The notes under the pieces: model-generated
Told to the model about the DNA's origin: nothing
Database searches by the model: none
What the model saw: the letters and a program-made list of their open reading frames with translations, nothing else
Translations under genes and position numbers: made by a program
From: Epithemia pelagica
Taxonomy: Eukaryota; Protista; Bacillariophyta
DNA length: 64,000 bases
Direction: 5' to 3'
NCBI GenBank assembly: GCA_946965045.2
Contig: OX337230.1
Span: 3,906,001-3,970,000, forward strand
Shown here: piece by piece, positions 1,741 to 44,376 of the stretch
Position numbering within the stretch: position 1 is the first letter of the stretch
Layout: each line of letters begins with the position of its first letter

Positions 1741-3713
1741 TGGCACCACCCACAATTGTTGTTGGTGTTGTTCTTGTTGTGGATTTCCTGTTTGTTGTCT
1801 TTTTCGTTGAGTGCAATATGGGCAGTCGCCCACACCAAAGGTCGTCGATCGTCGTATTCGATGGACTAGGACAAAGGATTCCGTCGTCTGGATCAATAAT
1901 GCTCCCAGTACTACTAGAAACAACCAGAACACCAACACGCTGCTAGTACTACAGCGGCACAACCGAACACAAAGAATGATGGAAACGTGTGGCCCACAAC
2001 AGAATGACAAAGAGCAGACAAAAAGTGGCAATCTCAATGATGCTGGTTGCAGGTTTCACCTACAAACACCAGACTACAACTCGCTTGGTTGGTTGGTTCT
2101 GCAATGCCTCTCGAATATCTTTTGGTCTCTCGTCGTCGTCGTCGTGGGTGTGCGGGTTTGTGATGGTTGTGTGTCGTCATCGGCCAGATCCAGAATTCTT
2201 GGGAGCAAACATTTGTTGTGTGGTCGACAGGCCATGTGCGACTGCAGCTCGTCATCGTTTCAATGCGACCTATCCGCGACCTACTTCTCGGTCGCGCATT
2301 AAATGCGTGAAATGCAAAGCTCCAAGAGAGTATACAAGTATGTCTACTAAGGGCTGGGTAAGCCGATCCATGTTCGGCTAAGTAGGCTCAGTACATTAAT
2401 CTACGTAGAGTACATAAAATCATATAGTACACGTCACGCCGGAAATGGTCGGAATTTCAAAAAAATGCAAAAACGCTCGACAATGATGGCGAGATCCGGT
2501 GACGCCGTATGCATTCACCCATGCATCGCATAAACATCCAACCACCGTAAGTCCTTTGCCTTTACCTTTGAAATGGTTGTCTGAAATTACAGAAGATTTG
2601 CCAAGTTGGCTGAAAAGGTACGCTCATTTTTCTGCAGTGATGAAATCGAACGACCGCCCTAACTCACTCATTTTTCAATGCTGACTCGACCGAATTGAAA
2701 GCATAGTCACTCTAGTAGTAAATAATCTTATTGTCAAAGCGGTCGAGTCAAGCTCTATTATTGAGGAAGTTATGGCCATGGGGGTGACGGCTTCCACCAT
2801 TGTCGAGTGATGGCTTCCAATTTGCATTGTTTCTCGTGGCAGCAAGTTTTCAATTTGAGACCATCCGCCCCACTTGTTACACTGATGAAAATAGTACTAC
2901 AAGCTGAGTTCAGGGAGTGTGTTCCTGTCGTAGACTCCTGTAGAATTTGTACCAGAGGAGTAATCCTGGAAAGCGTTCTGCGTTATTAGCGTCCGACTAG
3001 CGACTTCCTAGTGGCTGAAATAAATATTTTATTAACTTTAGTGTAATGTGTGATTTCTTCCGAACGCTAGATTTTCATCAAAAATTACGAAAAAACAGTC
3101 GACTGTGTTGACCATGGTGGAGGGCCACCCCATCCGTTCGAGATGTTGCCGAGCTGCATCCAGGTGCCTTAGGGTGTTATTCGACCACCACCAATGGGGC
3201 AACAGCTCAAACGGTTGGCATCATCCACAACAACATGATCATCGGATGCACCCCACGCACGATAGTCTCGTACAAAACGAAGTTTTTCTGGGGGAACGCG
3301 AGATTGTCGAGTTTCGGAAGCACTTTGCACAACAGAGGCATAATTATAAGGGCTATATTAACAAAGATGGCTGGCGCGTATTACGTAGATTTCCTACTGG
3401 AGCGCTACGACAGGAACATTCTGTCTGAACTCAGCTTGTACGTAGATTAATGTACTGAGCCTACTTAGCCGAACATGGATCGGCTTACCCAGCCCTTACT
3501 TCTACTGTCTACCCGACAAAAGTTCTCGTCCAGATCGTACATTTTGATTGGGTACCAAGGTTTTGAATCCCGCCTGACTCGGAGAAAATGTGACAAGAAC
3601 CGACAGTTTTTCAAACGTGCCCCATTCTTGACCCACACGTCTCCACTCTCTCACTTGTAAACCCCAAATTTTTTGGGAGAGATCCTGATACATCGGCGAT
3701 ATCATAGTTCACC

Positions 3714-4292
3714 ATGTTTCGATCCTGGACCAAGCTTCTTTCCCACAGTCGCGTCAAGCACTGTTGTGCTCGTCCGTGTATGAGCGGTTACCGCTCCAAG
3801 TCCTCCATCGGAAGAGAGGACAATTATTATATAAGGAAGCTGGAAAGCCATTTCACTGAAAACAGGAAGGAAACAATGCATCTGTGGAATGAAATGCAGA
3901 TTAAGGCCAAAGAAACAAAGAACGAAACAATGATTTTAGCCAAAGAAACGAACAGGAAAATAGATACGTGGGCCATTGGACTCAGTGGACTTTTGATCTC
4001 ACTGTTCGGCGGCACTGTCATTTGCTGGCAGCAGCATTCGGCGAGCGTTTCCTCACGTCTCCAAGCCCAGGACGTATGGATTCAAGCCCAGAACAAAGTA
4101 ATCGCGTCCCATAGCACTAAAGAAATGAAGGAGATGAAGGATCTGTTTGATGAAATAATGTACAATGAAGAACAAGAAAGATTGAAGAAGGCGCAAGATC
4201 TGTGCATGGAAAGGATCAGAATGGTACGGAACTTGGGACTTGGGTGTTCGGTCATGTGCGTACTCATGGGACTTGTACTCGCACTCTGGTAA
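3714..4292 (+). CDS. Orphan leader/coiled-coil/TM protein, divergent member of the MFRYLPK family, two hydrophobic segments
   Basis: Leader MFRSWTKLLSHSRVKHCCARPCMSGYRSKS is homologous to the other family members. Hydrophobic segments are WAIGLSGLLISLFGGTVICW and LGLGCSVMCVLMGLVLALW. Confidence 0.65.
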   Translation: MFRSWTKLLSHSRVKHCCARPCMSGYRSKSSIGREDNYYIRKLESHFTENRKETMHLWNEMQIKAKETKNETMILAKETNRKIDTWAIGLSGLLISLFGGTVICWQQHSASVSSRLQAQDVWIQAQNKVIASHSTKEMKEMKDLFDEIMYNEEQERLKKAQDLCMERIRMVRNLGLGCSVMCVLMGLVLALW

Positions 4293-4339
4293 CTTATAAT
4301 CGCATTCTGGTGACGTATTTTTCCAAGCGAATCGATTCC

Positions 4340-4930
4340 CAAGGTACTCAAGGACTCTTCCAAGACTCAAAGCTACTAGCCCGGGACAAGGTGATTTCGA
4401 TCCGGAGCAGCAAGAAAGGAGTTTGAAACTTACTCTCGGATAGACAATTGAGCAACAAAATAATCATTCTTCCTTTTGAGTCAAACGCTATTTTGTACTA
4501 GGGAAACTTATTCATGCGAGCGCGGGGATGTCCTTCCCATTCATTAGTTTTGGCAGGAGTACAGCGACTCTTTGGACAGACACGATTCTTTACACCTCCC
4601 TCGAAATTTTAGGCCTCAATGGAGTTCACACCTCCCTCGAAATTATAGGCTTCAATGGAGATTGATGCTGGAAAGCGTTTCGTTGGATTCCATGGTTGTG
4701 TTTCTGTCACGACTCTGTCTCATTTTGGGATTATACGGACTTCTCCAGTCGAAAATGTCTACATCGTGGTCGGTTTGGATTTTGAGAGAGGTGACTTGTT
4801 GCAATGTCGCGTCCGTTTTACAAAAAAACGGCCAATCTAATCAAATTTTGAGCCAAGGAAACATTGGGCTTCGAATAAAAGGCCAATGGTATGGAATGGC
4901 CGTGACACCCACCGTTTCGGTCGGTCATCC
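4340..4930 (-). pseudogene. Inverted, degraded copy of the aminotransferase 3' end and its downstream intergenic region
   Basis: Reverse-complement match to about 8600-9100. Encodes VGVTAIP..AFYSKPNVSLAQNLIRLA with frameshifts. Confidence 0.8.
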
Positions 4931-5630
4931 CACAGGCACGGTTGTGGTGGTTGGTTCCGTGTCTGTCGTCTTGCCCAATCGTTTGGGGGTGGACTTGTTT
5001 TGTTGCCGTGCCACGGCTTGTTCTTGTTCCTGTCGCGCCTGTTGTTCGTATTCCAAGCGCTGCGTCAATGCGAATCAACTTCATTTCTTCCTCCCGTTCA
5101 GTGGCTTCTTGTTGGGTGATAAATAATTTTTTGCCATGACGATATTGAAAGTCCGTCAAATAGGATCCAAACACACCAATACAAGAGAGAGAGAGAGAGA
5201 GAGAGAGAAAGGGAGAAAGAACGAAAAGCGCAAAAGGCAACGACAGCCATCCAACCAAGAGCGAGAAAGAAAGAGGCAAGAAGAAAAAAGCACAGATCCA
5301 AACCAATCAGAACAAAATACAATCCGTGTGGTGGTGTATCCGAGTGTGACACGCAGATCCTCGTTCGTGGTCGAACACGATACGCACCAAACAAACTAGG
5401 TAGTACGTGCCGCAATGGTGGGGAATTGTCCATAGACGCGGGTATGCAAGAGTTTGAGGAAGAGTTGCAAATGTTCCTTGCCGGACCGACCATACACAGG
5501 ATTCATCCGAAATGGGGAACGGCCGCGAGGGCGACGGTCCGCACCGGATTGGCCGAAATGTAGTTGGCCACGCGATGATGAAGGCTCAAGGTATCATCAC
5601 CGGGAACAATAGGAACGCCCGATTGGGCGA
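4930..5630 (-). pseudogene. HIG1-domain gene remnant (end of exon 1, intron, exon 2)
   Basis: Matches 54300-55090 (ITQQEA..EEMKLIR and the conserved intron) with deletions. Confidence 0.75.
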
Positions 5631-5679
5631 CCAGTCGTCACCGGATTCGGCATCCTCCTCCATCGTGGTGAAATGACAA

Positions 5680-6100
5680 CCATCACCACGCAATCAAACA
5701 ACAACCTCCGTGCACATTGCAAGCCACTGACACGCGCTCCGTCAATCAACACGTTGACATACTCAACCGGATTGTTATTGTTATTGTTGTCGTTGTCATT
5801 GGTGGTCGTTTTGTCATGGTGGTTGTATCCATACTTGTTGTTGCTGTTGGTATAGCCAATGTGATTGGTCTCTGCGTTACGTTTGCCGGCTTCGTCCGAT
5901 GCTGTTGTTGCTACTGTTGCTTGTTCTCCGGGCATTGGCACCACCCACAATTGTTGTTGTTGTTGTTGTTGTGGATTGCCTGTTTGTGGATTGCCTGTTG
6001 TTGGTCGTCATTTTTGTGTGTACAAGATGGGCGGTCGACCACACCCAAGGTCGTCGATCGTCGTATTCGATGATATACTATGATAAAGGATTCCGTCGTC
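5680..6100 (-). pseudogene. Duplicated 5' fragment of the amine oxidase gene
   Basis: NNNPVEYVNVLIDGARVSGLQCAR matches NNNPVEYVDVLIVGAGVSGLQCAK at 1520-1600, with the GxGxxG motif degraded. The promoter 6050-6470 resembles 1850-2300. Confidence 0.75.
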
Positions 6101-6544
6101 CGGATCAGGATCAATACTCCCACCAGTAATCGAAACAACAACAACAACAACAAACGAGTAGTAAAACGACGGCACAACCGAAAACGAAGAATGGTGGAAA
6201 CGTGTGGCCCACAGAGAATGACAAAGAGCAGACGAGAATTGGCCGTCTCTCAATGATGATGGTAGCACGTTTCACCTACTAGCACCAGACTGCAACTCGC
6301 TTGGTTGGTTGGTTCTGCAATGCCTACTATATCGTTTTGTCGTCGTGTGTGCGGGTTTCTTTGTGATGATGATGATGATCGACAGGCCATATGCGACTGC
6401 AGCTCGTCATCGTTTCAATGTGACCTACACGCGACCAAATAAATCGGTCGCGCATTAGATGCGTGAAACGGTTGGATCTTTTGGCTCGATCACGCAGAGA
6501 GGGAGAGAGGAATCCGCCGCATCCCCCAAAGACTGCAATACACC

Positions 6545-8763
6545 ATGGTTCGTTCGTCCTTTTTATCGTCGGGTTTTGGACTGTCACGTTATGGCAGTGG
6601 TTCGGCGTCGTCCTTGTGGTCGTTTGGATCCTGCGGGTGGTCGTCTGCTGGAATCATGGCTGCCGCTAGTAGTAGTAGTGCCGAAAGGACACTGCCATCA
6701 CAACGTTGGTCTTCTCCGTTGAGAGGAACCGTGTCGTCTTGCTTGTTTTCCACTGGGAATCCCAACAACGAAAACGACGACCACCACCAGAACAAATCGA
6801 CTTCTTCTTCGTCGTCATCGTCGTCGTCTCCCATTCGTTTGGCCCATCGCTTGGATGGTTTGGATTCTCCAACCGTCTGGCATGAATTTACGCCACTTTC
6901 CAAACAACACCAATCTATTAATTTGGGACAAGGCTTTCCCGATTGGGATCCACCCAGGTTTGTCGTGGAGGCCCTGCAAGCCGCCGTCACACACCGTCAT
7001 GCCAATCAATATGCACCCTCCCAAGCCCATCCAGCCTTGGCGCAAGCCCTCGTGCACGAATATACACACCACTTGTGGAACAACGACAAGGACAGCGAAG
7101 ACCATACGCCGAGTCCGGACGCGGCCTGTTTCGACTTGGATCCGACGCAACATGTGGCCACAACGGTTGGTTGTACGCAAGCCTTGTATTGTGCCTTGCA
7201 AGGATTGATCAATGTGGGAGACGAAGTCGTCTTGTTGGAACCCGCCTTTGATATTTATCATTCGCAAGTGCGCATGGCCGGTGGTACCTGCGTCTTTGTC
7301 CCCCTGCGACCCCAACGACATATGACACCGACCGCAAGCAGCAACGACCAAACGAAGAAGACTACTTTGGTGGACCCCCCCAACGAATGGCATGCCAGTG
7401 ATGTGTTTGACTTGGATTTGGAGGAATTTCAAGCCGCCTTGTCGGACCGCACCAAAGTCATTTTACTCAATACACCGCATGTAAGTCTCCTCACAATCAT
7501 AATCGTACCCAGAATCGGCGCGTGTCCTGTGGTTCCTTGTTGTGTGTGTGTGTGCGTTTGGACCAGAGGACGCCGTGCGGAATTGGAACCGTAATGTTCC
7601 CAAACAGAAACACCCACCCAAAGAACATTGGACTCCCTACACCTCTCCTGCAATGGTACATTCATGTGTATACATGTGTGGAGTTGTAAGAGACTGTGAC
7701 AAACGTGCGAGAAAGAGAGAGAGAGGCACGCTGCGTGTTTTTGTTCCACCACTCGTCCTCTCTCATGCTACTTGTGTATATACTCTATAGAATCCTACTG
7801 GTAAGGTGTTTTCTCGGGCCGAATTGCAAGGCATGGCGGATATTTTGCAACAACCCGAATATCAACATATTGTGGTCATTTCGGATGAAGTGTACGAACA
7901 CATTGTCTTTGATCCCAACACACGACCCCACGTTTCCATGGCTACCATCCCGGGCATGTTTCATCGGACCTTGACCTTGAGTTCCTCGGGCAAAACGTAC
8001 GTATATAATCGTTCTCTCGTATCTATGTATTGTTGTTGTTGTTGTTGTTGTTGTTGTGTGTGTGTTGGTCGTTGCATCCTCGAGTATATAGGGATAGGGA
8101 TTGTGTGTGTGTGTTTTGTGGGTCTCACATGCTTTCCTGACGTGTCTTGTTGTTGTTGGTCGTTCCTTTCTTTCTTTTTGTCTTTCACACTTGGCCATTA
8201 GGTTTTCCTGTACGGGTTGGAAAGTGGGATGGGCGATTGGTCCTGCGCATTTGGTCCATGCTGTGACGGCCACCAATCAATGGATTACCTTCTCGGCACC
8301 GACACCGACCCAAGATGCCATGGCGCAAGCCTTGCGTCAAGCACGAACCGAGCCCTACCACGGCCATGCCACATATTTTGACTATGTGGCCGCAGAATAT
8401 CGTCGCAAACGCACCATTTTGCAAACGGCCTTGACCAACGCCGGCTTGACTCCCATTGTTCCCGATGGATCCTTTTTTGTCATGGCCGACACCTCTCAAG
8501 TCGAAATTCCCGAATCTTATTTGCATCACGTGACACGAGCCATGCCCCTTCGGACATTGGACCAACGACGCGTGGCTCCTCGCGATTGGGCCTGTTGTAG
8601 ATGGATGACCGAAACGGTGGGTGTCACGGCCATTCCACCATCAGCCTTTTATTCGACGCCCAATGTTCCCTTGGCTCAAAATTTGATTCGATTGGCCTTT
8701 TGCAAAACGGACGAGACATTGCAAGAAGCGGCCCGGCGATTGGAACAACACTTTGGAAGATGA
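6545..8763 (+). CDS. Kynurenine-oxoglutarate transaminase / glutamine transaminase K (class I/II PLP aminotransferase), 3 exons
   Basis: INLGQGFPDW, NTPH|NPTGK and PLP-lysine motif SSGKT|FSCTGWKVGW. Exons are about 6545-7480, 7791-7996 and 8202-8763 with GTAAGT/GTACGT..AG introns. The N-terminus is Ser/Arg-rich like a transit peptide. Confidence 0.92.
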
Positions 8764-9159
8764 GAGAGAGTGGGATCCTCTCTCAAAATCCGTGCCGACG
8801 ACGATAGGCATTTTCGATTGGAGAACTCTGCATATTCCCAAAGAGAGAGAGTTTTGATAGAAACACAACACCATGGAATCCAACGAAACGCTTTCAAGCA
8901 TCAATCTCCATTGAGGCATATAGTTTGGAGGGAGGTGTGATGAATCGTGGCCCTCCAAAGAGTCGCTGTACTCCTGCCAAAACTAATGAATGGGAAGGAC
9001 ATCCCCGCGCTCGCATGAATAAGTTTACCTAGTACAAAATAGCGTTTGACTCGAAAAGGAAGAATGATGATTTTCTTGCTCAATTGTCTATCCGAGAGTA
9101 TTCCACGACCGACGCCCCGGCCCAAGATGCAGAAACTACGAAGAGCCTCGCTGCTTGCT

Positions 9160-9627
9160 TCACTTGCTCTTGCTCTTAATAATCATATCTTGTGCTTCGA
9201 TTTTGCTATCCTGGGCGTCAATTTTCCGGTCCTGGGACTCAAGCTTGTCATTTTGTGACTCAAAGCGTACATTTTGTGACTCAAAGCGTGCATCTTGTGC
9301 TTCGATTCGTTTCGAGAAACCCTCCGCCTGTCTCTGCAAATTGTTGGTGGACACATCGTGTAGAGCGATCATCAGTCCGATCATCAGTGTCCCCATTGTG
9401 ACCGTAAGTCCCGCTAGTCCCAACGCAGTTTGCGTCATGGTCTCGTTCATTTCCTTATTCATTTTCGTCATGGTCTCGTTCATTTGTTTAACAACTTCCT
9501 TCGGAACCGAAGAATCTTGTTGGCCAATGGAGGACTTCCAGCGGCGTCCGAACAAACACTTTGATGAAAGCTTTTTAAAGGAGGAAGGAAACATGGTGCA
9601 ACACAGGGGCGTTACCTCATGAGGCAA
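9160..9627 (-). CDS. Orphan coiled-coil/TM/AQD-heptad protein, type 2 leader (MFPSSFKKLSSKCLFGRRWKSS)
   Basis: Intact ORF with basic acid-free leader, EMNETMT coil, TM LGLAGLTVTMGTLMIGLMIAL and xxAQD/SQN heptads. A near-identical copy lies at 51632-52099. Confidence 0.7.
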   Translation of the reverse strand: MPHEVTPLCCTMFPSSFKKLSSKCLFGRRWKSSIGQQDSSVPKEVVKQMNETMTKMNKEMNETMTQTALGLAGLTVTMGTLMIGLMIALHDVSTNNLQRQAEGFSKRIEAQDARFESQNVRFESQNDKLESQDRKIDAQDSKIEAQDMIIKSKSK

Positions 9628-9810
9628 TCCAGTTGTAGATGGACCGTGTTTTATGCTTGGAGGAGGAAAGTAATATCAATGCTATAGTACAATCTGCCGT
9701 TAAAAACTGCCCTACTAAGCACAACTGAGAGAACGAGATTGATGCTTGAAACGACGCCCCGACCCAAGATGAAGAAACTACAAAGAGCCTTTCTTGCTTC
9801 ACCAAGAGCC

Positions 9811-10368
9811 TTACTTGCTCCTGGACGCAATAAGCTTGTCTTGTGCTCGGATTTGGGAATCCTGTGCGTCCATTTTTCGGTCCTGAGCTTCGATTTTATC
9901 ATTCTGTGAATCAAAGCGAGCATCTTGTGCTTGGATTTTGGAATCCTGGGCGTCCAATATCCGATCCTGAGCTTGGAATTTATCATTTTGTGCTTCAAAA
10001 CGAGCATCTTGTGCTTCGATTCGTTTAGAAAAATTCTCCGAGTAATGTTGTATTTTAGAGTTGGACATACCGTGTAGCGCGATCATAAGTGTTGCAAGGA
10101 GTCCCGACAGTGCGAACATAAATCCCTGCTGCGTCTTGATGCTTTGAAAATGCAGCTCGTTCATCTTCTGTTTAATGCCGTTCATCTTCTGGTTCATTTC
10201 ATTAAACAGACTTTTCATCTCAATCATGTTTTCGCGCAAACCACTCTTCGTTGCATAATTGTCTTCTGTTCCGAGGGTGGACTTTGTGCGGTGTCCGCTT
10301 ACACACAGACGAGCACAACAGTGCTTGACGCGACTGTGGGATATACGCTTTGGAAGGTATCGAAACAT
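9811..10368 (-). CDS. Orphan coiled-coil/TM/AQD-heptad protein, MFRYLPK leader
   Basis: 185-aa ORF with leader, EMNQKMN coil, TM GFMFALSGLLATLMIAL and nine heptads of form hydrophobic-x-A/S-Q-D/N-x-x. Confidence 0.75.
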   Translation of the reverse strand: MFRYLPKRISHSRVKHCCARLCVSGHRTKSTLGTEDNYATKSGLRENMIEMKSLFNEMNQKMNGIKQKMNELHFQSIKTQQGFMFALSGLLATLMIALHGMSNSKIQHYSENFSKRIEAQDARFEAQNDKFQAQDRILDAQDSKIQAQDARFDSQNDKIEAQDRKMDAQDSQIRAQDKLIASRSK

Positions 10369-11030
10369 GGTGGACTATCGCGGGTTCTTTCGAATGTATC
10401 GCAGGAAGGAAAACTGTGGGCTCACAAAAAATGTTCTCTGCGGGTGACGGGAAAGTGGCAAGTCTGAGGGAGAGAGGAGACGTCCACTTTTGCTGCGCCA
10501 CGAAAAGACTGCAGGAGCTCCAGAGAGTCGAGAGTGTTTGGACGAAGAGGCGCCTGCACGCAAACCCAAAAGAACGGGAACAGTGAACAGTGAAGCTTGA
10601 TATTTTTGATATTCCATTGTTGTGGTGTGCGTCGGGAGTTGTGTGCCCCGTCCGTCACCTCAGGATATGAATATAACTACTACTATATACTTTATACTGG
10701 TAGACATGGAGGAGGCGGTCTGTACAGTTTGAGTTATAGTGGATCGTACGATTGTTGTGTGTTGAGGAGGCGGTCTGTACAGTTTGAGTTATAGTGGATC
10801 GTACGACTGACTCTCGTGGCGCTTCAAAAGTGGCTCTCTCTCAGACTTGCCACTTTCCCGTCACCCGCAGAGAACATTTTTTGTGAGCCCACAGTTTTCC
10901 TTCCTGCGATACATTCGAAAGAACCCGCGATAGTCCACCATGTTTCGATACCTTCCAAAGCGTATATCCCACAGTCGCGTCAAGCACTGTTGTGCTCGTC
11001 TGTGTGTAAGCGGACACCGCACAAAGTCCA
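10278..11030. repeat. Palindromic cassette 1: 191-bp inverted arms (10278-10468 and 10840-11030) around a 371-bp spacer
   Basis: The arms are reverse complements by direct comparison. Each contains about 100 bp of upstream sequence plus the first 30 codons of the divergent genes. Confidence 0.95.
10709..10806. promoter_or_regulatory. 43-bp direct repeat, two copies (period 55 bp), inside the cassette spacer
   Basis: GAGGAGGCGGTCTGTACAGTTTGAGTTATAGTGGATCGTACGA at 10709 and 10764, also present inverted in cassettes 2 and 3. The regulatory role is inferred only from its position between divergent genes. Confidence 0.5.
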
Positions 11031-11830
11031 TGGAGGAACGAATTCCTGAAGAGGCCGTTCCTGAACAGGATTACATGATTGATGTAAGCTATGAGATGGA
11101 ACAAGTTGAACTTGCTATGCAATCTGCAACGGAGGAAGGGCATTTTCTGGGGCGTCAGTGGTTGTTTCAAGGACGAGATTTGCGGGCGGAAGTTCGCTTG
11201 TCTTCACCCGAACGTCCGCTCGATGTCCACACCTACTTACGAGGAAACAATTGCCAATCCTTCGCCCATAATCGCCATCCCTTTGTGGCTGCTTTATATT
11301 TGTTGCGAGAGGCGGACGGAGGATCAGCTGTTTACATTTCGGCTCCTTTTTTGACAGACACGTACTTTGTCGACGAGTTGTGTCATTTTGCCAAGCCCAT
11401 CGAGGACGGAGGACGCTCACTACAAGTCCATCTTTTGCTAGGACCAGCGGTGTTCAATGAAACTGTGATCAGTCGTTTTATTGGCACAAGCCAAGTCCGT
11501 TTTGAATCTATTTCGCGTTTGAGCTTGAGGCGTTATGGGATTGACAACCCTGTACAAAATAGCGCGTACATGCACACAGAAGTATTAATCTCTACGGCCG
11601 GAACTATGATCGGCTCATACAATTATACGTTTGCTTCAAGATTCCGCCATCGTGAGGATGGCATCGTCATTGAAAATGGATCCATGGCCGACCGATATCG
11701 AGAACGCTTTCGGGACGTATGGAATATTTCTACTGTCTACACGCCACGTCGACCTCCGGACGAACCGAACGATGAATATTCCAAGGAACCTGGTTTTGTG
11801 CCGGAAGCGAAACGAGCGAAATATTCTTAA
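10940..11830 (+). CDS. PLD-superfamily (Nuc/Zucchini-like) single-domain protein fused to the MFRYLPK leader; HKD motif degenerate
   Basis: VYISAPFLTD (typical PLD N-terminal strand) and YMHTEVLISTAGTMIGSYNYT..HREDGIVI, which aligns with HxK(x4)D(x6)GSxN..E. C-terminus is EAKRAKYS. Confidence 0.72.
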   Translation: MFRYLPKRISHSRVKHCCARLCVSGHRTKSMEERIPEEAVPEQDYMIDVSYEMEQVELAMQSATEEGHFLGRQWLFQGRDLRAEVRLSSPERPLDVHTYLRGNNCQSFAHNRHPFVAALYLLREADGGSAVYISAPFLTDTYFVDELCHFAKPIEDGGRSLQVHLLLGPAVFNETVISRFIGTSQVRFESISRLSLRRYGIDNPVQNSAYMHTEVLISTAGTMIGSYNYTFASRFRHREDGIVIENGSMADRYRERFRDVWNISTVYTPRRPPDEPNDEYSKEPGFVPEAKRAKYS

Positions 11831-11869
11831 TATAATAAAATCGTCCGGCTTCTGATTTTTGTTTGTGCC

Positions 11870-12286
11870 TACGCCGCCGAGAATGGGCATTTGAAGGTGC
11901 TGCAGTGGGCAAGAGCGAACAGATGTCCATGGGACGAAGACATTTGTGCCTTTGCCGCCAGTAATGGGCATTTGGAGGCTTTGCAGTGGGCCAGAGCCAA
12001 TGGTTGCCCGTGGACTGACTACACTTGTACCTGCGCCGCCGAGGGTGGGAATTTGGAGGTGCTAAAGTGGGCAAGAGCCAATGATTGTCCATGGAACTCG
12101 AGCACTTGTACCGAGGCCGCTAGGAATGGGCATTTGGAGGTGTTGCAGTGGGCCAGAGCCAATGGTTGCCTGTGGAACGAAGACACTTGTACCTGGGTCG
12201 CCGAGAATGGGCATTTGAAGGTGCTGCAGTGGGCAAGAGCCAATGATTGTCGATGGTACCATCCATTGATCGCTCGGAGAATGTAG
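11870..12286 (+). pseudogene. Ankyrin-like GHLEVLQWARANGCPW repeat fragment (about 5.5 repeats of 25 aa), 5' truncated
   Basis: Repeats of AAxNGHLEVLQWARANGCPW. No clear ATG start; it begins about 40 bp after the PLD stop. Confidence 0.75.
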
Positions 12287-13569
12287 GGTCATCCGTGTCC
12301 TGGTAATGTATCGCACCATGAAACCTAGTATAGAGAGCCTCTATGTTCATCGTTTCAAGTTTCTCCGAAATCGAGGAAAAACGTTTCATATATTCTGAAA
12401 TATACAGAATTAATGAGATGAATACAGTTTGGAACAAGTCAAACGATAACAGTTGTATTACCGCGCCTACCTTCACAACTATGCCACTGCATATAATTCT
12501 GTTGAAACAATTCACACGGTAGCTTCAGAAATTTGAACGAGAAAAGCTTCAACCCACCACTCATGTCATACACAAACTGGGCTAAAGGAGTCCTCTTCAC
12601 GCGAGGTGAATGGAACCTGGGATCCTTTTCTTGATTCTTGTACAGCCGTAACTCGATACCAATGGGGCGGAATATAAGATTTCGTCCGCAAACCGCACTT
12701 CCAGGATTGAGACCATCAGGTATGGCTGTCACTGCATCCTTGTGATTTACGATTCTAAGGTGCATGATCCTACCCTGTCTCTCCAGTTCATAAAAGGCAC
12801 GTGCGGTCTCAAGGTTCCCCCATCTTGGTGAGGCAAACGAGCAGCAGTAGATGGGCTTTGGAATTTCATCACCTGAAGTGGCACCAAGCCAGAAAGTGAA
12901 GAGCGAAGCAAGAGCACCTACATCACGATGCGTGATGAGTAAAAGAAGCGCACCCGTCCTCTCCTATTTCACGATCTTTTGAAACTTACCGCCAAGGCTA
13001 TGCCCCGTCACGTGAATATTGAAACCAGGATGAGTCTCCAGCAATTGGAGCAAATGGCCAAGGATGACATCATACTTGTGGGTGTTTTGCCCACGTGTGC
13101 TAAATAAATAATTGTAGAACCCGTGATGGATGCCAATATGGGTTCCTTGTTTTATTGATGTATGGCAGCCTTCCAGTGGATTGGCAATTCGTGTTACAAA
13201 CGCATCAGCATCAACACACCAATCAGTGATTGTCACTGAGCCACGGAATGTCACTCGAATGGACTTTTCTACCCTGTGAAGTCCAACACAACAATGCTGA
13301 GGTTTCCATACGTATCGCAACAAATTTCAAATGAGGATTGCCATATAGGACACTTACTTGTCGACCGAAATACAGTACACGAGACTATTTTGCTCATTCT
13401 CATCATCAAAGACTACGATCATTTGTGCATCACGTAGCCTGGGTTTGTATACAAATGAGTCATACAGACCAAAGAATATGTCAATAGAATGGACGGTGAG
13501 AGTCACATGATATGAAAAACATATTTTTGGTTTGTATGAACAGTTCAGGAATGAGAAAGGATTTTTCAA
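12120..13569 (-). CDS. Class 3 lipase, multi-exon (boundaries approximate, 5' exons unresolved)
   Basis: VTFRGS..DW, IHHGFYNYL, VTGHSLGG|ALA, SFASPRWGN and RIVNHKDAVTAIP. Several GTAAG..AG introns. Confidence 0.75.
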
Positions 13570-15024
13570 TAATGGAGGAATGATGATAGTGCTTTATGAT
13601 GCCGCCATTCTACAAAAGGTTTCGGTAGTGAATCATGGTGTTTCAGAAGAAATATAACAGCAGAGGCAGGCATGGCAAGAATATTAAAAAGTCCAACAAG
13701 TTTACCCCATGGGACATGGCATGGGACATGGATTATGATGATGGTGTCAAGAATGGATATCATGAACGTCTTTTTATGAGAAATCGGGAGTTGAATTTTG
13801 GACCACAATTTGTTTTCTCATTTAGATATGAAAGAAGGGAAGGAGAAACTTAAGTTTCATAATGGAAAACCCATTATGCCTTTGTTGTGTGTGCAATGTG
13901 TGTGGGTGTTTCGCCTTGCCGTTCCACAAAAGACCCAATTTGCATTGCCCGCCCCCATTAAAGATGTTTATGCTTTTTCCAAATGAATCTCTATCGTATC
14001 CTCGGTGAATGTTTACAAACTTCAATATTCCATCCTTCTTCGATTTTCTTCCGTTTTTGTTCAACATGTTTACGGCTATGATGATCGTACTCGTCCTCGT
14101 TATCATCATGAAAAGTCTGCCTTTTTTACATCATCATCATCTTTCACCAATAATGCATATCTTAACAAGAAGACAAGCAATATTCAAAACAATAGAAAGT
14201 TCAACCATAGGTGGCCAGTACTTAATTTTCCAATATCATCGGAGACTACGACTACGACGACGAGTGTGCAGTTATTTCCAGGAAGTAGAAAACGATGTCA
14301 ACAACAACATCACCTATCATTTGATGGTCTACAGATTTCTTCCTCATTTGATCGTTTGGAACGTAGCTGTCGCAGTTCGATGAGTGCCCGAAAAGATGGC
14401 AGCGACGACGCTGGTAGTGATGGCGGCGGCGGTAACGTAGTAATTCTACATCCGCTCGGCGGAGTGGGGAGGCACGAGGAGGGGCTATTGACTCCGAGAA
14501 GGGCAATAGCTCCGAGAAGTGGACCGCCTTCTAAATCCGCGTCAGCGGATTTGGCGGTCCACGACGAGGAGCTATTGCCCGCCGAGGAGTCAATAGCCTT
14601 GGCAAGTGCCCCCACGACCAAGAGGGGATGTCGCTTGCTTCTATAGCCTCCGAGTCCCCCCTAATTAACTGTCACACTTTTTTCCCAGGACTGTTTTTTT
14701 GCTCCGCACTAGCTTTTTTAGCTCCGCACTTGCTCGCGTATGGGAGCGCAGCCGTCGTGGGCAATATAAGGCTTTATTAGACGAAAATCCTACTTCCATT
14801 CCGAGGAGCTATAGTAGAACTCTACATGAATAATACGTTCTTCATGGATTCGCCTTCACTATAGTCGATGACCTTTCAATTGCTTTTTTCTTTTGAGGTG
14901 CACCGAATTATGGAATTCCGATATTGTGGAGTTCATAGAGGGTTTCTCCTACAGTGAGAAAGTACATCAAGGATCAAGTTACATCATTCGCATGCCCGAA
15001 AGATACCCTGATGGACAATGAACC

Positions 15025-15662: not shown

Positions 15663-16041
15663 AGTCAAAGTACACAGGATACTCTGTAGTAGCTAGGGGC
15701 AGTACCTATATTGGCGTGGAGGTGATCAAGTCTCCACGACAATACACTATAGAAGTTGTTTCACAACTTTCTGTTTGTTGATACTATAAGCTCTAGGTTT
15801 AGGAACTACATTCGATTCCTCATTTGATTCCTCACGAGGAATCAATTCCTCATTTACTCATGGAGGTTAGTTTGGAACCATTGATGCCAATGGCTAGAGC
15901 TTGGTTACTATGCGACGGGCAATGCCTTCTCTGGTAGTAAGGCATTGCTCTTGGATACATAGTGGGGACACGATTCTATGTCTCACAGATTCGAATCGTG
16001 ACTGCCATATCGCCTGTCCGTCACACTGATTAACCGCGACT
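15663..16041 (-). repeat. 3' LTR
   Basis: 379 bp, one mismatch seen versus 24330-24708. Confidence 0.95.
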
Positions 16042-16082
16042 CTCCCTCTTGACAAGGGCGATATCTTTTCAAACACAGTCAA

Positions 16083-24329: not shown

Positions 24330-24708
24330 AGTCAAAGTACACAGGATACTCTGTAGTAGCTAGGGGCAGTACCTATATTGGCGTGGAGGTGATCAAGTCT
24401 CCACGACAATACACTATAGAAGTTGTTTCACAACTTTCTGTTTGTTGACACTATAAGCTCTAGGTTTAGGAACTACATTCGATTCCTCATTTGATTCCTC
24501 ACGAGGAATCAATTCCTCATTTACTCATGGAGGTTAGTTTGGAACCATTGATGCCAATGGCTAGAGCTTGGTTACTATGCGACGGGCAATGCCTTCTCTG
24601 GTAGTAAGGCATTGCTCTTGGATACATAGTGGGGACACGATTCTATGTCTCACAGATTCGAATCGTGACTGCCATATCGCCTGTCCGTCACACTGATTAA
24701 CCGCGACT
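24330..24708 (-). repeat. 5' LTR
   Basis: 379 bp, near-identical to 15663-16041. Confidence 0.95.
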
Positions 24709-25882
24709 CCCATGATATCAACAAACGAGGACGAAACGACTGAAACACATTGCAATTTGTTAAAATCTCGAGCCCAAGCCCTGGCATCCATTGCCTCATG
24801 GCATTTTTTCGGGGGAGAACCTCGAGCTGCAGTGTATGCGTGTCGTATGATGTGTGCCATGGGACCTGCTGTGCGTCAGGCAGAGATTTCGGGGTCGGAA
24901 CTGGGAGTGCCCTTTTTGCGTCTCTTACAAGGTGCCAGTCAATGTCAATCCAAGATTCGTTCAGGAGAAATAGTCAACGAGGCTTTCCTTGGCCCCAACA
25001 GCGAAAAGGTGAGCAAACTCCAAGTTCTCTGTAACGTGGTGTATGCCGTTTTGGATGTCATGATGACTTTACCTTCGGAAAATGACGACCGCGTCTACGA
25101 GGTACTTTCGAATGCCTTGGTACGCCGCGTTCTGTTTGTGACGGGGGCGGTCAACATGGATGGTTGTCCTCCACCCGATCGAGGGGAAGCGGCCTTTATC
25201 GGAAGAAGCAATGTGGGCAAGAGTCGCTTGGTCAATGCCGTGACGAACCGCAAAGCACTGGCCTATACTAGCAAACGACCCGGCAAGACACAACAGTTCA
25301 ACTTTTTTGCCGTCAATGACAAGGTCGGTAGAGAACAAGAAATCAAATACGGCGACATGGTGCATGGAAGCAAGGATGCAGATTCGTTCTATATGGTAGA
25401 CGTAAGTGAAATTGTTGTTTCGTGGACATCTGGAAAGAGTCTGATTGCGCGCTCGTTCTCACACGTGCTGCTTCTACCAGCTTCCCGGATTTGGCTACGC
25501 CAGGGTACCAGAGAAACAACGCAAAGAATGGTCCTCCTTTATGCAAGAATACATTGCAACTCGCCCAACCCTACGAGTCTTGTTTCACTTGATTGATAGT
25601 AGGCATGGTCCAACTGAAGAGGATGCCGCTATTATGAAACAAGTCGAGGAAAACATTCCTCCCACAGCCAAATATGTAATTGTCCTAACAAAGGCGGATA
25701 AGAATAGCAAAGGAGCACCGGAAAACTATTCTGGAAAGGTATCCAACGATGTGATGAGCAAGCTGCGCCAGGTAATGGGAGAAACGTTACAGCATGATGT
25801 TCCTGTTGTTTTGACATCGGCGGAAAGCAAACTCGGCAGAGATAAAATGTGGAGCTATCTTCGCCGTGCTGCCATTTCCTAA
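24709..25882 (+). pseudogene. 3' half of the EngB/YihA GTPase gene (GTPase domain, intron 25402-25480)
   Basis: G1 GRSNVGKS, G2 PGKT, G3 D|LPGFG and G4 TKADK. Confidence 0.88.
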
Positions 25883-25908
25883 ACTGTAGCGCACGGTTCT
25901 CTTAAGTC

Positions 25909-27110
25909 TATCAACTGGTTTCGGTCCCTTGTTTCCCCGACGACATGACCCAATCCGGCATGCGATTCAGTTTCCAATGACTCCGATCGACCTTGTTCCG
26001 TTCGGCCAGGGCAAGCACTTTCAAAAACAGCAGTGTTGCCGGTTCGCCATTGGAACCAATTTCTTCGCAGATAATGTTCAAAACAATCTCATAGGCGCGA
26101 TGTGACGGTGGATCATCGATATCGTACAGCATTTCGACCTTCGAACCTCGGTGGCATTCATTAACAGGGGAGTGGTAAGACTGTCCATTTTTACCAAGAG
26201 ATCCCATGCTTTCTTTGACCAATATAGTTCCTCCGGGGGCGTTTCTCCTTTTTGCTTAGCTTCTTGCCAATAAGCCCATAGGACACGTTTGAAGTCGGCT
26301 CCTTTTACTTGTACACCCAATCAGGGTTCGCAGCTCCAAGTGCGCCAGCCATGTCGTAAAGTGTTGTCCCACTTGCGGAGGAGAAATGAGGGTGAGCAGC
26401 GTCGTATGTTGCGAGGTGCTGGTTAATGACTCCGACTTGGACATGGACGAATCCAGCAAGGCCATGACAAATTCCACGTCACTGACAGAGTTTCGATCGG
26501 ATTTGGGTGTGTCGCATAATAATGGCAGAGCAGATGTTTGCACTGTTCAAGGTACCACCCAGACAGAGGAACTGGAGGACTTTTTCGGTTTGCGAGGCAT
26601 CCAAAATGGTAAAGGTGGGATCTTGTTTGAGTGCAATGTCCAAGAGCTCGATAAAGCGTTCCGAAGCCTCTCGACAATATTCGGGCAAGGTGAATCCAAT
26701 TCCTGCCGGACTGGATTACGACGATGTGGTTGTTGAGCTTGGAGCAAACGGGCAAACGAAAAGAGCATGGGTCGCAACACGTTGAGAGTGGTGGATTGTC
26801 CCACTTTGGTATACTCGTGAATCGCCGTATCCGATTTGGAGTTTTTCGGATTGTCGTCTGGTTTCGATTCAGAGTCTGCTTCTTCTTCTTCTTTTTGTGC
26901 ACGACTGGTCAAAAAGTTGACAATGCCCTGGACGGTTGTTCGCCAAAAACTGTTTGGTTTGCCCTGATCCTTGTCTTGTTCTGCATGAAGTTGCTCCAGG
27001 GATTGTGCCACCAGAGTGTTTTCCATGACTGCCCTACGATCGTGATGGATGCGATGCAACCCTCGAAGAGCCGCCAGTGCCAAATCCAAGAGTTGCATTT
27101 GAGTTCGTCT
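25909..27110 (-). pseudogene. Degraded partial duplicate of the 3' half of the 1040-aa gene at 35326-38448
   Basis: QLLDLALAALRGLHRIHH.. through ..WVMSSGKQ matches 35324-37100, with internal deletions and frameshifts. Confidence 0.88.
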
Positions 27111-35230: not shown

Positions 35231-35325
35231 ATTGGCATCCTAGGTCACGACAGGGACGCCGGCGCTGAATCTACATAAATTCTTCTTTTTCTTCCACCGG
35301 ATCCAGTCTGTCGGATCGGGGTCTA

Positions 35326-38300
35326 TCAACTGGTTTCGGTCGCTTGTTTCCCCGACGACATGACCCAATCCGGCATGCGATTCAGTTTCCAATGACTCAG
35401 ATCGACCTTGTTCCGTTCGGCCAGGGCTAGCACTTTCAAAAACAGCAGTGTTGCCGGTTCGACATTGGAACCAACTTCTTCGCAGATAATGTTCAAAACA
35501 ATCTCATAGGCGCGCTGTGACGGTTGATCATCGATATCGTACAGCATTTTCAAACGACCACCTTTCGACCTTCGAACCTCGGTGGCATTCATTAACAGGG
35601 GAGTGGTAAGACTGTCCATTTTAACCAAGAGATCCCATGCTTTCTTGGACCAATATAGTTCCTCCGGGGGCGTTTCTCCTTTTTGCTTGGCTTCTTGCCA
35701 ATAAGCCCATAGGACACGTTTGTAGTCGGCTCCTTTTACTTGTACATCACCGCCCCCAATCAGGGTTCGCAGCTCCAAATGCGCCAGCCATGTCGTAAAG
35801 TGTTGTCCCACTTGCGGAGGAGAAGTGAGGGTGAGCAGCGTCGAAATCATGGAGAAGGTATGTTGCGAGGTGCTGGTTAATGACTCCGACTTGGACATGG
35901 ACGAATCCAGTAAGGCCATGACAAATTCTACGTCACTGACAGAGTTTCGATCGGATTTGGGTGTGTCATAGTAATGGCGGAGCAGTTGTTCAATATATCG
36001 GTCGGTTGTTTCTGCCGATATACGCAACGATTTCACGTCTAACAACACCTCCATCAGTTTTTGAGAGGTTGTCAAGTCATGACAGGCGTAGGCCCCTGCG
36101 AGTGAATCAATCAACGCAGGATCTCGTCCGTTGAGGTACTTCTTGAGATCGTTTGCCTCCTCGAGCGTTTTTCGGAATCCTTCGTAAAAGTCTTTTCCCC
36201 TAAAACGACGAACCACAGTTACGACAAATTGTTGGAATTCTTCCTCAAGACCTTGATCCGAAATCTCACAAACAGCCGCAATCACGGCCAATGTTTGTTC
36301 CAGTCGCTGAACCTTGGAAAAGGGATAATTCTTGTTCCATCGATCCATAAACAAACGTTTCAGTTTGCGAACGGCTTCTTGTCGTTCCGTCATGGGACAA
36401 TCTTTATTCTTGGCCACTTGTACATAGGCCCGCCACACAATTTTTTCTCCGTCTTCGTCCACCACTTCATCGCGTTTGCCCCTACCTGGGGGCTTGTCAT
36501 CCTTTCGGGCCATGTACAAGTGCTGGCACCATTCAGCACTGTTCAAGGTACCACCCAGACAGAGGAATTGGAGGACTTTTTCGGTTTGCGAGGCATCCAA
36601 AATGGAAAAGGTGGGATCTTGTTTGGATACAATGTCCAAGAGTTCGATAAAGCGTTCCGAAACCTCTCGACAATATTCTGGGCTAGGTGAATCCAATTCC
36701 TGCCGGACTGGATTACGACGATGTGGTTGTTGAGCTTGGAGCAAACGGGCAAACGAAAAGAGCATGGGTCGCAACACGTTGAGAGTGGTGGATTGTTCCA
36801 CTTTGGTATACTCGTGAATCTCCTCATCCGTTTTGGAGTTTTTCGGATTGTCGTCTGGTTTCGATTCAGAGTCTGCTTCTTCTTCTTTTTGTCCACGACC
36901 GGTCAAAAAGTTGACAATGCCCTTGACGGTTGTTTGCCAAAAACTGTTTGGTTTGCCCTGATCCTTGTCTTGTTCCGCATGAAGTTGCTCCAGGGATTGT
37001 GCCACCAGAGTATTTTCCATGACTGCCCTGCGATCGTGATGGATGCGATGCAACCCTCGAAGAGCCGCCAGTGCCAAATCCAAGAGTTGCAGTTGGGGAC
37101 TGACAGTCGTCTTGTTGTTGTTGGCTTGCTGCTGCGATTCGGCGGCAGTCGTCGGGTTGGCAGTGGATTCTTCATGGTGGTTGGAGGAGGAAAGGGTCGT
37201 GCAATCTCTTGCTGCAGTTGCCGCAATGCTGGCCAACGACCGAGTTACCCCTTGAAACTTTTGTTCCGATTGACGAATCTCACGTATATTGGGAATGTTC
37301 ACCAGGGGTGCTTCTTCCTCTTGTTCTGTATGTGGATTTTCTGTCACTTGCTCCGTTTCGATTGCACCGTCTTGGACGGATTCGGCAGTTTCTTTGGTAC
37401 CTCCTGCCGTGGGTTCATTCGCGGATACAGAATTTTCCAATGGCTCTTCTTGTTCTTGTGGACTGGAGGCATTGGTGACAGTTTCCTCATTCATGTCGAC
37501 TGGTTTTGGCTCCATCTCACGATGCAGTGATTCCATCCAAAGGGTGAGACGAAGTTCCAACTCGGCAAAGGACGGATCATTGGATTCGTTTAATGATGAT
37601 TGACTGGAAGCAAACGTATTGGTGGTATTCGTGTCGGTAGTTTCTTGCTCGTTCTCTGCCAAAGAATGCTGCAGTACCCGATCATGGCTATTATCACCCA
37701 GTAACTGTCGTTGGTACGTTTGCGCCAATTGTTCCACTTGAATACAATGGTCTTTTAACTGTTGATTTCGTTTTTGACGTCGTTCAGCCTCGGCGGCCGC
37801 CTTGGATTGTTTCACGTGTTGCTGGTGTTGCGACTGTTGTTTGTGGTGATGCTGCGACCGTGTCACACGTGGTCGATGTCGTCCATGGGATCCTCCTCCT
37901 CCTCGACCGTGATGCTGGTGCGAACGAGAAGGACGAGACGAGGATCGACCATGAGGATGATGATGACTTTTGTGGTTGTGCGAGTGAGATTTGGGAGACG
38001 ACGACTTGGAGGAAGAACGAGGAGATCCTCGATAGGCCGCTGGAACCCAAATCGATGGCATCTTTGGTTGGTTCGGTGTAATAGCACTGCCATGAAAATT
38101 CCGGATCCCAAATTCGAATGGAAGAATCAATGAAACGGGTGAGCCAAACCATTTCTTGTCGCCTTGCTGGTCCATGATGCTCCTTGGTTCACTGGACGAC
38201 GAACAAAGACCAAGACTGGCATAGTGTGTGGGATGCCAACGTCGGGTCAAACGTGTCGAAGAACAGGCACGCCACCCGACAGTGTCCAGTTGCAAGACTT

Positions 38301-42003: not shown

Positions 42004-43263
42004 ATGAAGACTTGTAGTTGCGGCCTGTTCTTCCATGTCACTGCCATTCTTGCTCTTTTCCCGCAAGTGACGACAAGTTTCCAATGTTCCTCCTGGCATG
42101 GTGAAAAACCAGTGCCCCTTCGACAAAGACGATTTGCGGGCCACACTCCCCAGCAGGGGATTGCTCCATCATTTGGGGTTGTTCCGAACGACCATGCACC
42201 ACAACACCAGCATCCTTTTGGGGGACGGGTCAATCCGTCCTTGTCGTCCAGTCGAGTACGAACAAGGCTCGGACTTTCCATGGCATCGCTAGGAGAACCA
42301 ATCACGTCTTTGGCGTCGTCCTTATTCCGAACCTCGGGCAGTGTACCGTTTATCCAAGCCTTTGGGGTGAATGCCGTTTTGTTTGCCGTCTTGTCCCGCA
42401 AACTGTCGACCATGTTAACACCGACGGGGTTTGTTCATGCCTTGGCCTTGGGCAGTTCCTTGTGGGCCACCTTGGGTGTTTCGGGATGGTTGTATTGTGT
42501 GGCCTATCTGTTTTTGGGGCAAGCCGTCACCAAGGTTCGATTTGCGGAAAAACAAAAGGCTGGACTGGCCGAAGGTCGGGGTGGACGACGGGGTCCTGAA
42601 AATGTCTGGTACGTATTAGAGCAACTTGTTGTTGTTGTTGTTGGTTTTGGTTTTGTGCTTTGGAACGACTCGACGACGACGGAGTGACAAGACGCCTACT
42701 ACTGTCGTTACTGGACAGACTTTGGGATTGCAACGTCTCATGTTTGCCGTGTGCACCCACCAATTCTATTGTACAGGGGCAGTGCCGCGACGGGCTTGCT
42801 CTGTGCCATTTGTTCCGTACAGGGCCCCGTCTTGTGGGGGATTCGATCGGAACTATTCGTCTTGGGGTATGTGGCATCGATTGCGACCAAATTGGCTGAT
42901 ACCTTTGCTTCCGAAATTGGCAAGGCCTATGGGAAGACCACCTTTTTGATTACCACCTTGGAACGTGTTCCGGCCGGTACAGAAGGAGCCGTATCGGTGG
43001 AAGGGACGGCCGCATCCGTGGTGGGTGGATTGCTCCTCAGTTTGGTCGCCCATGGATTGGGCTTGATTGGGAGCAGTTGGACGGCGGTAGCTCTTTCGAC
43101 CGTGGCCGCCTTTGTAGCGACCAATGTGGAAAGTTTGATTGGTGCCACCTTGCAAGAAAAAGAGGGATTGCAATGGATGACGAATGAAGTGGTCAATTTT
43201 ATCAACACGTTTATTGGAGCCACCTTGGCCATGGTGGGAGGCATGGCACTTTTGTCTCTCTAA
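42004..43263 (+). CDS. DUF92/TMEM19 family membrane protein, VTE6-like, 2 exons, plastid-type leader
   Basis: GLAEGRGGRRGPENVW|GSAA, KLADTFASEIGKAYG and GTEGAVSVEGT. The intron is about 42610-42776. Confidence 0.85.
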
Positions 43264-44376
43264 AAACAGAGAACTACCTACCTAGGAGTACTCCTAGTAG
43301 GAAAGGTTAGTAGTCGGTAGCAAGTAGGAACGCGAAGGACTTTGTCGCAGGAGTGCCAAGGATCCACCATAGACTCCTCTACAAGGAGAAGAAGTATATC
43401 TTCTAAGGTACTCCTACTCGTAACGTTCTGTAGAGATTTGATGCACAAGATGTAAGAATTCAAGAAGTTGACAGAGCAGGCAAACATGAAGAGGACATGG
43501 GCACTCCTGGAACGATACGTTGGGGCAGTGGTGATTGCGTCATCTTTTCTCCCGCTGTGGCCCGCAGACGAGACGATAGGATCCATCCACCGCTTCCATG
43601 GCCACCGAACTTTCATTGCTCGCGATCATTTCCCTCTCTTGGATCGGATGATACGTGGACACGACGATCCCAAGTGTTACCTTGTGTTTCTCTAGAGATT
43701 CCCAGCTCTCACAATAATGTCGTTGCTGGATCGTGCGCCGCATTTTTGGAATGGTCGCCCGGTGTTTCTGGGTCTGGCCAAGCGCAAGGACAACACAAAC
43801 ACATGGGTACACCACAATACAATAAAATTATTCTCTCCATCAAAGACTTGAAGCGAAGATGGTGAAATGTCTATGTGTCGTGTCGTGTGGGTTGGCATGG
43901 AAATTGGCCACCGAGCGACACAAACTTTTGGACGCACACGACTTGCCAAAATTTCCAGCGTCTGCGACCAGTATCGTTCAATACATCTCTCTTTACTCAC
44001 CGAAGCAAAATACACATGAGTAGTGTCTTGGCGCGCCGGCATTTCTTTCGATTCCTGCGCGGCCGGTGGATCTTGGCTGATTTCTCGGCTGATTTCTCCC
44101 TCTATTGTCGATTAGAGGTTTGGATTATGGTGTCGCCATTATACCACCATCAAGGTCTACGTAGCCACGTTGAGATTACATGAAGTAGTTTGGTGGCGAC
44201 GCTTCAATCCAACGAGGGACCTCTTGTGGTAAAGCGCATGGAGTTGTCTCGTGTTGATTTGAGGCACAGTTGTCCTGGTTTGATAGTTTCGAGTCCTTTG
44301 GAACACGACATTCAATTCACACCACCACACCACCACACCACTTGTACGAAATCAAACACAACGACGACGAGAAACC

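Follow-up and report, generated by a model that had tools for sequence, protein, structure and literature searches.

Background

Gene-bearing palindromes on the primate X and Y chromosomes have arms that are more than 99% similar, carry derived variants on both arms of one palindrome and have spacers that invert (PMC8600007, PMC8981503). At human Xq27.1 a palindrome of 180 bp is a hotspot for large insertions copied from other chromosomes, with clean junctions that are poor in microhomology (PMC6489244). In Drosophila, chimeric genes are known in which the promoter and N-terminal part of one gene were joined to the body of an unrelated duplicated gene, followed by tandem amplification (PMC1463047, PMC5460883). 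Similar features are combined at a locus of the diatom Epithemia pelagica, studied here in a window of 64,000 nucleotides (assembly GCA_946965045.2, contig OX337230.1, positions 3,906,001 to 3,970,000 of the forward strand). Short palindromic cassettes in this window place two genes head-to-head. Each arm contains an upstream region and a 30-codon leader, followed by a gene for a coiled-coil protein with a transmembrane (TM) helix or, in one slot, by a gene with a phospholipase D (PLD) fold.

The locus is best explained, with a probability of about 0.75, as a young and unstable segmental-duplication cluster in a diatom chromosome and not as a dedicated system. A preliminary description of the window had proposed that the arm is a portable module for expression and mitochondrial targeting with varied cargo, and that the cluster resembles a selfish toxin-antidote or drive locus or a system for organelle DNA elimination. 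The cassettes appear to be copies of one head-to-head duplication of a diatom orphan gene for a membrane protein, together with a single PLD fusion, and nothing in the cluster therefore points to a new system for targeting or drive.

Results

Cassette architecture

The three head-to-head cassettes with inverted arms that had been described in the window are real (Table 1), and 359-378 nt separate the arms. Six copies of the initial 23 nt of the leader open reading frame (ORF) form three divergent pairs in the window, against an expectation of 0.00 in shuffled sequence. A search of the whole 60.5-Mb genome for arm copies added a fourth cassette, here called cassette 0, located 4 kb upstream of the window (G000:C3:3901834-3902599). 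The same search did not extend the list of cargo beyond the leader's own family and PLD. All arm copies, some of them decayed, lie in one cluster of ~85 kb on contig 3 (3.875-3.960 Mb) and none were found elsewhere in the genome.

The arms do duplicate the proximal upstream region and the leader, as previously suggested: a core from -106 to +90 (106 nt upstream and the first 30 codons) is near-identical in eight of eight arms, with eight variable sites. The core presumably carries the promoter. Five of the six window copies encode exactly the 30-residue leader noted before, and the sixth (52283-52879, minus strand) differs in residues 25-28. The inverted homology of cassettes 2 and 3 does not stop at codon 30 but extends into the gene bodies, and the 30-codon edge is seen only where PLD is attached, so there is no fixed 30-codon unit. 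The eight slots of the four cassettes hold five full genes of the coil-TM-heptad type, one truncated gene (78 amino acids, aa) and two PLD fusions, one of these in the window. Every non-PLD slot is thus occupied by a paralog of the leader's own family, which does not agree with a module for varied cargo. Self-comparison showed that the flanks A and B and a unit of 14.4 kb are co-duplicated with the cassettes.

Junctions and origin of the PLD fusion

Cassettes 1 and 2 are separated by a 33.6-kb segment that is duplicated from chromosome 1 (contig 1), with an identity of 99.4% at the left side falling to 94% at the right. Both junctions are clean, with at most 2 nt of microhomology. At the left junction the homology to contig 1 begins exactly at the PLD ATG (11030), which is also the end of the arm. 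The right junction (44647/44648) matches, to the base, the position at which the leftward gene of cassette 2 breaks off, leaving 78 aa. Because the junctions coincide with the arm end and with the gene truncation, cassettes 1 and 2 are overlapping halves of one head-to-head pair split by the 33.6-kb duplicate. Cassette 3, judged by its full A-cassette-B context, shows the undisturbed arrangement. The leader-PLD fusion is present in two cassettes because the 14.4-kb tandem duplication copied the fusion-bearing unit. The different cargo thus reduces to one rearrangement junction with later tandem copying, and by comparison of these copies the PLD fusion is a single event that was later doubled.

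The cluster probably arose in three steps. The 5' end of one family member would have been duplicated in inverted orientation, resulting in a head-to-head pair around a spacer of ~360 nt, and cassette 3 in its A-cassette-B context would be nearest to this initial state. A 33.6-kb copy of a chromosome 1 segment would then have been inserted into one cassette, and ~0.9 kb of cassette sequence would have ended up in duplicate, one copy at each side of the insert. At the left junction the PLD-like ATG would have been attached to codon 30 of the rightward gene, creating the chimera, and the right junction would have cut the leftward gene at codon 78. The 14.4-kb tandem duplication would finally have doubled the chimera-bearing unit. 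The palindromes also undergo recombination: gene conversion holds the -106 to +90 core near-identical, crossover between inverted repeats inverts the spacer, and unequal crossover yields hybrid genes.

Recombination and differences between haplotypes

The core is 99-100% identical compared with 94-97% for the co-duplicated flanks, which is the pattern of a palindrome under gene conversion. A G>T change at +65 is shared by the two arms of cassette 0 and absent from all the others, and arm-to-arm conversion is required to explain it. The spacer has different orientations in cassettes 1 and 3, both of which have flank A, and the two haplotypes also disagree in its orientation at cassette 2. The aligned copies document both arm-to-arm gene conversion and the flipping of the spacer.

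The second haplotype lacks positions 43050-44990 (1.9 kb; compared with L041:1886-1905). The left arm of cassette 2 and most of its spacer are missing from this haplotype. The deletion begins inside an ORF at 42751-43263 resembling the last exon of a DUF92 membrane-protein gene, and the allele of the other haplotype may therefore be truncated. Cassette 0 contains a hybrid gene from unequal crossover of two tandem paralogs, and the other haplotype still has both genes. The ratio of non-synonymous to synonymous substitution rates (dN/dS) is ~1 among recent paralogs of the cluster, and older copies carry stop codons. The leader start of the 185-aa coiled-coil gene is changed from ATG to GTG on the second haplotype (L061:5324-5326). 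The genes of the cluster look weakly constrained in these comparisons, and the hybrids, the truncation and the loss of a start codon appear to be signs of birth-and-death evolution.

A Copia-type element (RVT_2) is inserted ~2.4 kb downstream of the PLD gene on the second haplotype (L061).

The coiled-coil family and its leader

The family members in the five full-length slots are 143-198 aa long, with the leader followed by a short coil, a TM helix and ten repeats of seven residues on the xAQDxx-hydrophobic pattern. To judge from its paralogs, the leader is the native N-terminus of this species-restricted coiled-coil/TM family. The Arg/Lys-rich, acid-free and presequence-like composition that had been pointed out was also found here: the cassette leader has eight Arg/Lys and its first acidic residue is not before position 35 (32 in the PLD fusion). 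All three leader types have an acid-free stretch of 26-34 residues and 6-8 Arg/Lys each, as is typical in composition for presequences. The remote homologues P0021, P0067 and P0091 have the same acid-free basic N-terminal composition, and the N-terminus of one remote short homologue, which comes from an unrelated sequencing run, looks like a classic presequence. The N-termini of the family end in R-x-[WFK]-[KNT]-[ST]-[ST] directly before the first acidic residues, a motif kept in diverged paralogs and in remote homologues. The acid-free basic N-termini and the common end motif across the family make a mitochondrial-type presequence a fair reading of the leader. From its composition this is plausible, with the chances for and against about equal. 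The helical amphipathicity is not exceptional, with a maximum hydrophobic moment of 0.42 in a window of 18 residues that is reached by 40% of shuffled sequences.

Type 1 and type 2 paralogs have a stretch of 33 nt in the leader without any difference (10968-11000 and 3742-3774; codons for SHSRVKHCCAR). The synonymous divergence (dS) between these two leader types is 0.32, far below that of the remaining gene sequence, which is saturated at synonymous sites. The identical stretch could be a conversion tract or an element acting at the nucleotide level. No structured RNA element was seen in the 5' region and leader (RNA fold z = -1.0), and an Rfam search of 9000-12500 rendered nothing credible.

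Pfam searches with six proteins of the family (five with the cassette leader and one of type 3) gave only sub-threshold coil or TM noise (DUF16, RNase_Y_N, Flagellin_C, MCU). For the coiled-coil protein, a word-indexed search, the ESM Atlas and a full HMMER profile search of 1.8 billion representatives gave no matches other than paralogs from the same species, three short remote homologues and sequences that agree in the heptads alone. Some of these paralogs are single genes at dispersed positions and have no partner. The results define an uncharacterised family of diatom proteins with a presequence-like leader, a coil, a TM helix and polar AQD heptads.

The leader-PLD chimera and the native PLD family

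The presence of a PLD-fold gene in one slot, as proposed earlier, was borne out. An AF2 model (pTM 0.70) confirmed the PLD alpha/beta fold of the predicted fusion body, with FAM83, Nuc, PLD3/4 and Zucchini as top Foldseek matches (E 1e-9 to 1e-5), and the protein is of the single-HKD kind. With the family profile, PLD6 is matched at E 1.2e-3 and Nuc at E 0.017. For PF13091 (PLDc_2), which has a cut-off of 27, the score of the window copy is 23.7 bits, and PF13091 is present in 8 of 12 homologues.

All 11 full-length homologues have their first residue where the window ORF has M31, and the leader is absent in 12 of 12 homologues. The native family has an acidic N-terminus and a basic C-terminal cluster resembling a nuclear localisation signal. 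The only named relative is from Nitzschia inconspicua (40% identity), and no relatives were found in IMG/VR viral contigs.

A G at 11579 changes the lysine of HxK to Glu (HxE) in the window copy only, which thus lacks the catalytic pair of His and Lys. The lysine is kept in the upstream copy, the chromosome 1 copy, the other haplotype and the RNA contigs, and His212 is invariant. GSYN is also invariant, and the Asp position of HxK(x)4D is occupied by Thr, Ser, Gly or Ala in 13 of 13 aligned sequences. The two fusion copies of the window haplotype differ from the contig 1 copy by five non-synonymous changes and one synonymous change.

RNA contigs over the PLD gene come from metatranscriptomes of three studies and one run from another organism, with RNA status guessed, and they cover 11030-11852 only. 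In the three of four runs that reach 11030, the unaligned 5' end is a 5' untranslated region (5'UTR) of the contig 1 type and not the leader. The three runs that cover 11579 have A there, encoding Lys. Marine metagenome contigs have 82 nt of the same type of 5'UTR in common. The loose 3' ends of the RNA contigs are absent from the organism's own genome.

The PLD gene unit (window 10948-11832) reaches from ~82 nt before the ATG to 2 nt beyond the stop codon. Marine metagenome contigs (Tara, JGI; loci L052-L060) match it at 95-96% identity. Its flanking genes in these contigs are a 397-aa gene with no counterpart in this genome and a TrmO-like gene for which only a match of 59-64% at the amino acid level exists. 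A PLD pseudogene at L015, 85% identical, lies in yet another context. The synteny of L015 was compared in order to settle the ancestral position of the PLD gene, and its flanks are unrelated to both the chromosome 1 and the contig 3 context. Two further 3' continuations were seen in the RNA contigs, after 11828 and after 11852. With these differing flanks, the PLD gene is found in at least four contexts among near relatives, and gene-sized mobility or transfer may be the reason.

An ankyrin-type array downstream of the PLD gene starts 11 nt after 11852, where RNA contigs of other organisms cease to match, and this edge may be another rearrangement joint. Directly upstream of the chromosome 1 PLD copy there is a multi-copy sequence resembling a retroelement (L014:3000-5885; G000:C1:6868042-6870927), leaving only 115 nt of unique 5' sequence before the ATG. 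This sequence has ~20 copies of 1-2.2 kb at ~70% identity elsewhere in the genome, as well as pieces of 160-180 nt at 92-100% identity at ~15 further sites.

Other repeats in the window

A perfect inverted repeat of 60 nt (2348-2407 and 3439-3498), with arms 1 kb apart, is unrelated to the cassettes. The same applies to two internal duplications, 15663-16042 with 24330-24709 (99.7%) and 25906-27101 with 35321-37095 (91-96%).

Table 1. Features of the cassettes, the duplicated segments and the genes, in window positions (position 1 is the first nucleotide of the window)
Feature	Position	Strand	Description
Cassette 1, left arm	10278-10474	-	106 nt upstream of ATG and codons 1-30; 197 nt; arm identity 99%
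Cassette 1, spacer	10475-10833		359 nt; direct repeat with a period of 55 nt; orientation flipped compared with cassettes 2 and 3
Cassette 1, right arm	10834-11030	+	197 nt; ends at the rearrangement junction 11029/11030
Cassette 2	44675-45644		arms 44675-44970 and 45349-45644 (296 nt, 100%); spacer 44971-45348
Cassette 3	52768-53575		arms 52768-52985 and 53358-53575 (218 nt, 94%); full A-cassette-B context; kept in both haplotypes
Cassette 1, left gene	9811-10368	-	185 aa; leader and coiled coil, a single TM helix (residues 83-101), ten 7-residue xAQDxx-hydrophobic repeats
Chimeric ORF	10940-11830	+	296 aa; 30-codon leader in frame with the PLD gene, whose native ATG (11030) is the point of fusion
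Cassette 2, left gene	44628-44864	-	78-aa remnant; cut exactly at the right junction of the 33.6-kb segment (44647/44648)
Cassette 2, right gene	45455-45991	+	178 aa
Cassette 3, left gene	52283-52879	-	198 aa; expanded EMNQKFN repeat; variant leader tail
Cassette 3, right gene	53464-53895	+	143 aa; mosaic, with the leader/N-terminal part from one paralog type and the TM from a different one
Diverged family paralog (P0019)	3714-4292	+	192 aa; type 2 leader, 21/30 residues as in the cassette leader; inside the 14.4-kb tandem unit
Family paralog (P0018)	9160-9594	-	144 aa; type 3 leader, further diverged, basic, acid-free for 26 residues; no palindrome of its own
Flank A	6524-10200		aminotransferase gene and 2 coiled-coil genes; repeated at 48996-52672, 95% identity
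Flank B	45956-48244		repeated at 53848-56161, 94% identity
Duplicated segment	11030-44647		33.6 kb; matches G000:C1:6867926->6834224
Tandem segmental duplication unit	3516-14121		~14.4 kb; other unit at -9633 to -310, upstream of the window
Ankyrin-type repeat array	11863-12267	+	81-nt period; downstream of PLD; belongs to the duplicated segment, not to the cassette

Discussion

Alternative explanations

The idea that the arm is a portable module which captures cargo for mitochondria, and that the chimera is a functional new gene delivering a Nuc/Zucchini-like nuclease, draws on the acid-free leader with a net charge of ~+8 and its R-x-x-S type end motif, on the exact in-frame fusion and on the confirmed PLD fold. 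Against it, there is a single fusion event, the arm length is not fixed at 30 codons and the remaining cargo is the leader's own family. The leader core gave no match in JGI metagenome contigs, neither as exact DNA nor by degenerate back-translation, and its amphipathicity is no higher than that of shuffled sequence. The native PLD proteins have an acidic start and NLS-like C-terminal residues, the PLD transcripts seen (from RNA of other organisms) have the native 5'UTR, the catalytic Lys is lost in the window copy and five of six changes in the fusions of the window haplotype are non-synonymous. The module explanation is therefore judged improbable. The narrower case of a genuine presequence and a chimera transcribed from the arm promoter, making a young polymorphic gene that sends the putative nuclease to mitochondria, appears slightly less probable still. 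Of the three alleles seen of this gene, two have an intact HxK and one already has HxE. If the case were true, the short palindrome would also be a hotspot of recombination that could take up further cargo.

A selfish toxin-antidote or meiotic-drive locus could likewise show local amplification, a dN/dS near 1 and structural polymorphism between haplotypes. The partners in a pair do not have two distinct functions, though, but are paralogous copies of one gene or involve an accidental fusion, and dispersed single-copy paralogs exist without partners. No similarity to known driver or toxin families was found with Pfam, word-indexed, ESM Atlas and HMMER profile searches, nor was any evidence of toxin-antidote action, drive or organelle DNA elimination. 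The losses of start codon and gene ends and the hybrids fit neutral turnover. Drive is extremely unlikely. A programmed promoter switch, in which the spacer inverts to alternate the expression of the flanking genes, would account for spacer orientation varying between paralogous cassettes and between alleles. Such flipping is nevertheless expected by homologous recombination for any inverted repeat of 200-300 nt at 99-100% identity, and the sequence beside the cassettes showed neither a gene nor a site for a recombinase. Both arms have the same 106 nt upstream of the ATG, and flipping therefore alters little promoter-proximal sequence; a switch is very unlikely. Terminal inverted arms in four copies could also suggest a transposon of the foldback or terminal-inverted-repeat type, or an assembly artefact. 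The copies are all in one cluster with co-duplicated flanks and none has unrelated flanks. A second haplotype contig, diverged by ~1-2%, carries both cassette 3 and a leader-PLD cassette, and rules out an artefact. The chance that the cassettes are either of the two is as small as that of drive.

Some observations weigh against a segmental-duplication cluster without a new function. Both haplotypes have the fusion ORF, none of the three alleles seen is disrupted, and the fusion on the other haplotype (L061) retains every ancestral PLD residue including HxK. A junction that is in frame and exactly at the PLD start codon is unlikely from a random breakpoint, and the fusion may be retained because it is expressed. 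The RNA runs are from other organisms or metatranscriptomes which have only the PLD gene, and they do not imply that the chimera is silent in this strain. The identity of the 33-nt leader stretch between otherwise saturated paralogs could reflect function and not conversion.

Comparison with known systems

A segmental-duplication cluster of this kind is no new system for defence, drive or organelle targeting, but it offers a view of how such loci change, because the comparison of haplotypes catches the events while they are still polymorphic. A literature search specific to diatoms found nothing relevant, and the comparison is with other groups. Plant nuclear copies of mitochondrial genes have gained presequences by duplication of the targeting exon of another gene. 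The chimera is similar in that the basic N-terminal leader of one nuclear gene is set before an unrelated coding sequence. It differs because the cargo is not a former mitochondrial gene, and the targeting is putative.

The PLD family resembles Nuc (PDB 1byr) and Zucchini/PLD6 (PDB 4ggj) in its fold and in the region of the H-x-K...G-S-x-N motif. Unlike these, it is diatom-specific, with ~250-335 aa, an acidic N-terminal extension, no Asp of HxK(x)4D and no membrane anchor of the PLD6 type, and the window copy has HxE. In contrast to the Drosophila chimeras (PMC1463047, PMC5460883), the diatom chimera is predicted from sequence, and one copy already has a substitution in the catalytic site.

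The insertion at Xq27.1 (PMC6489244) differs from the diatom case in that here the palindrome itself is duplicated on either side of the insert and one junction is an in-frame gene fusion. A large interchromosomal duplicate in a palindrome has thus made an exact fusion at a start codon. The primate palindromes (PMC8600007, PMC8981503) have arms of tens of kb and more compared with 0.2-0.3 kb here, and the diatom arms contain only the putative promoter and the 5' end of genes that are autosomal and appear weakly constrained. The cluster is a natural diatom example of short gene-bearing palindromes with conversion, spacer flipping and unequal crossover.

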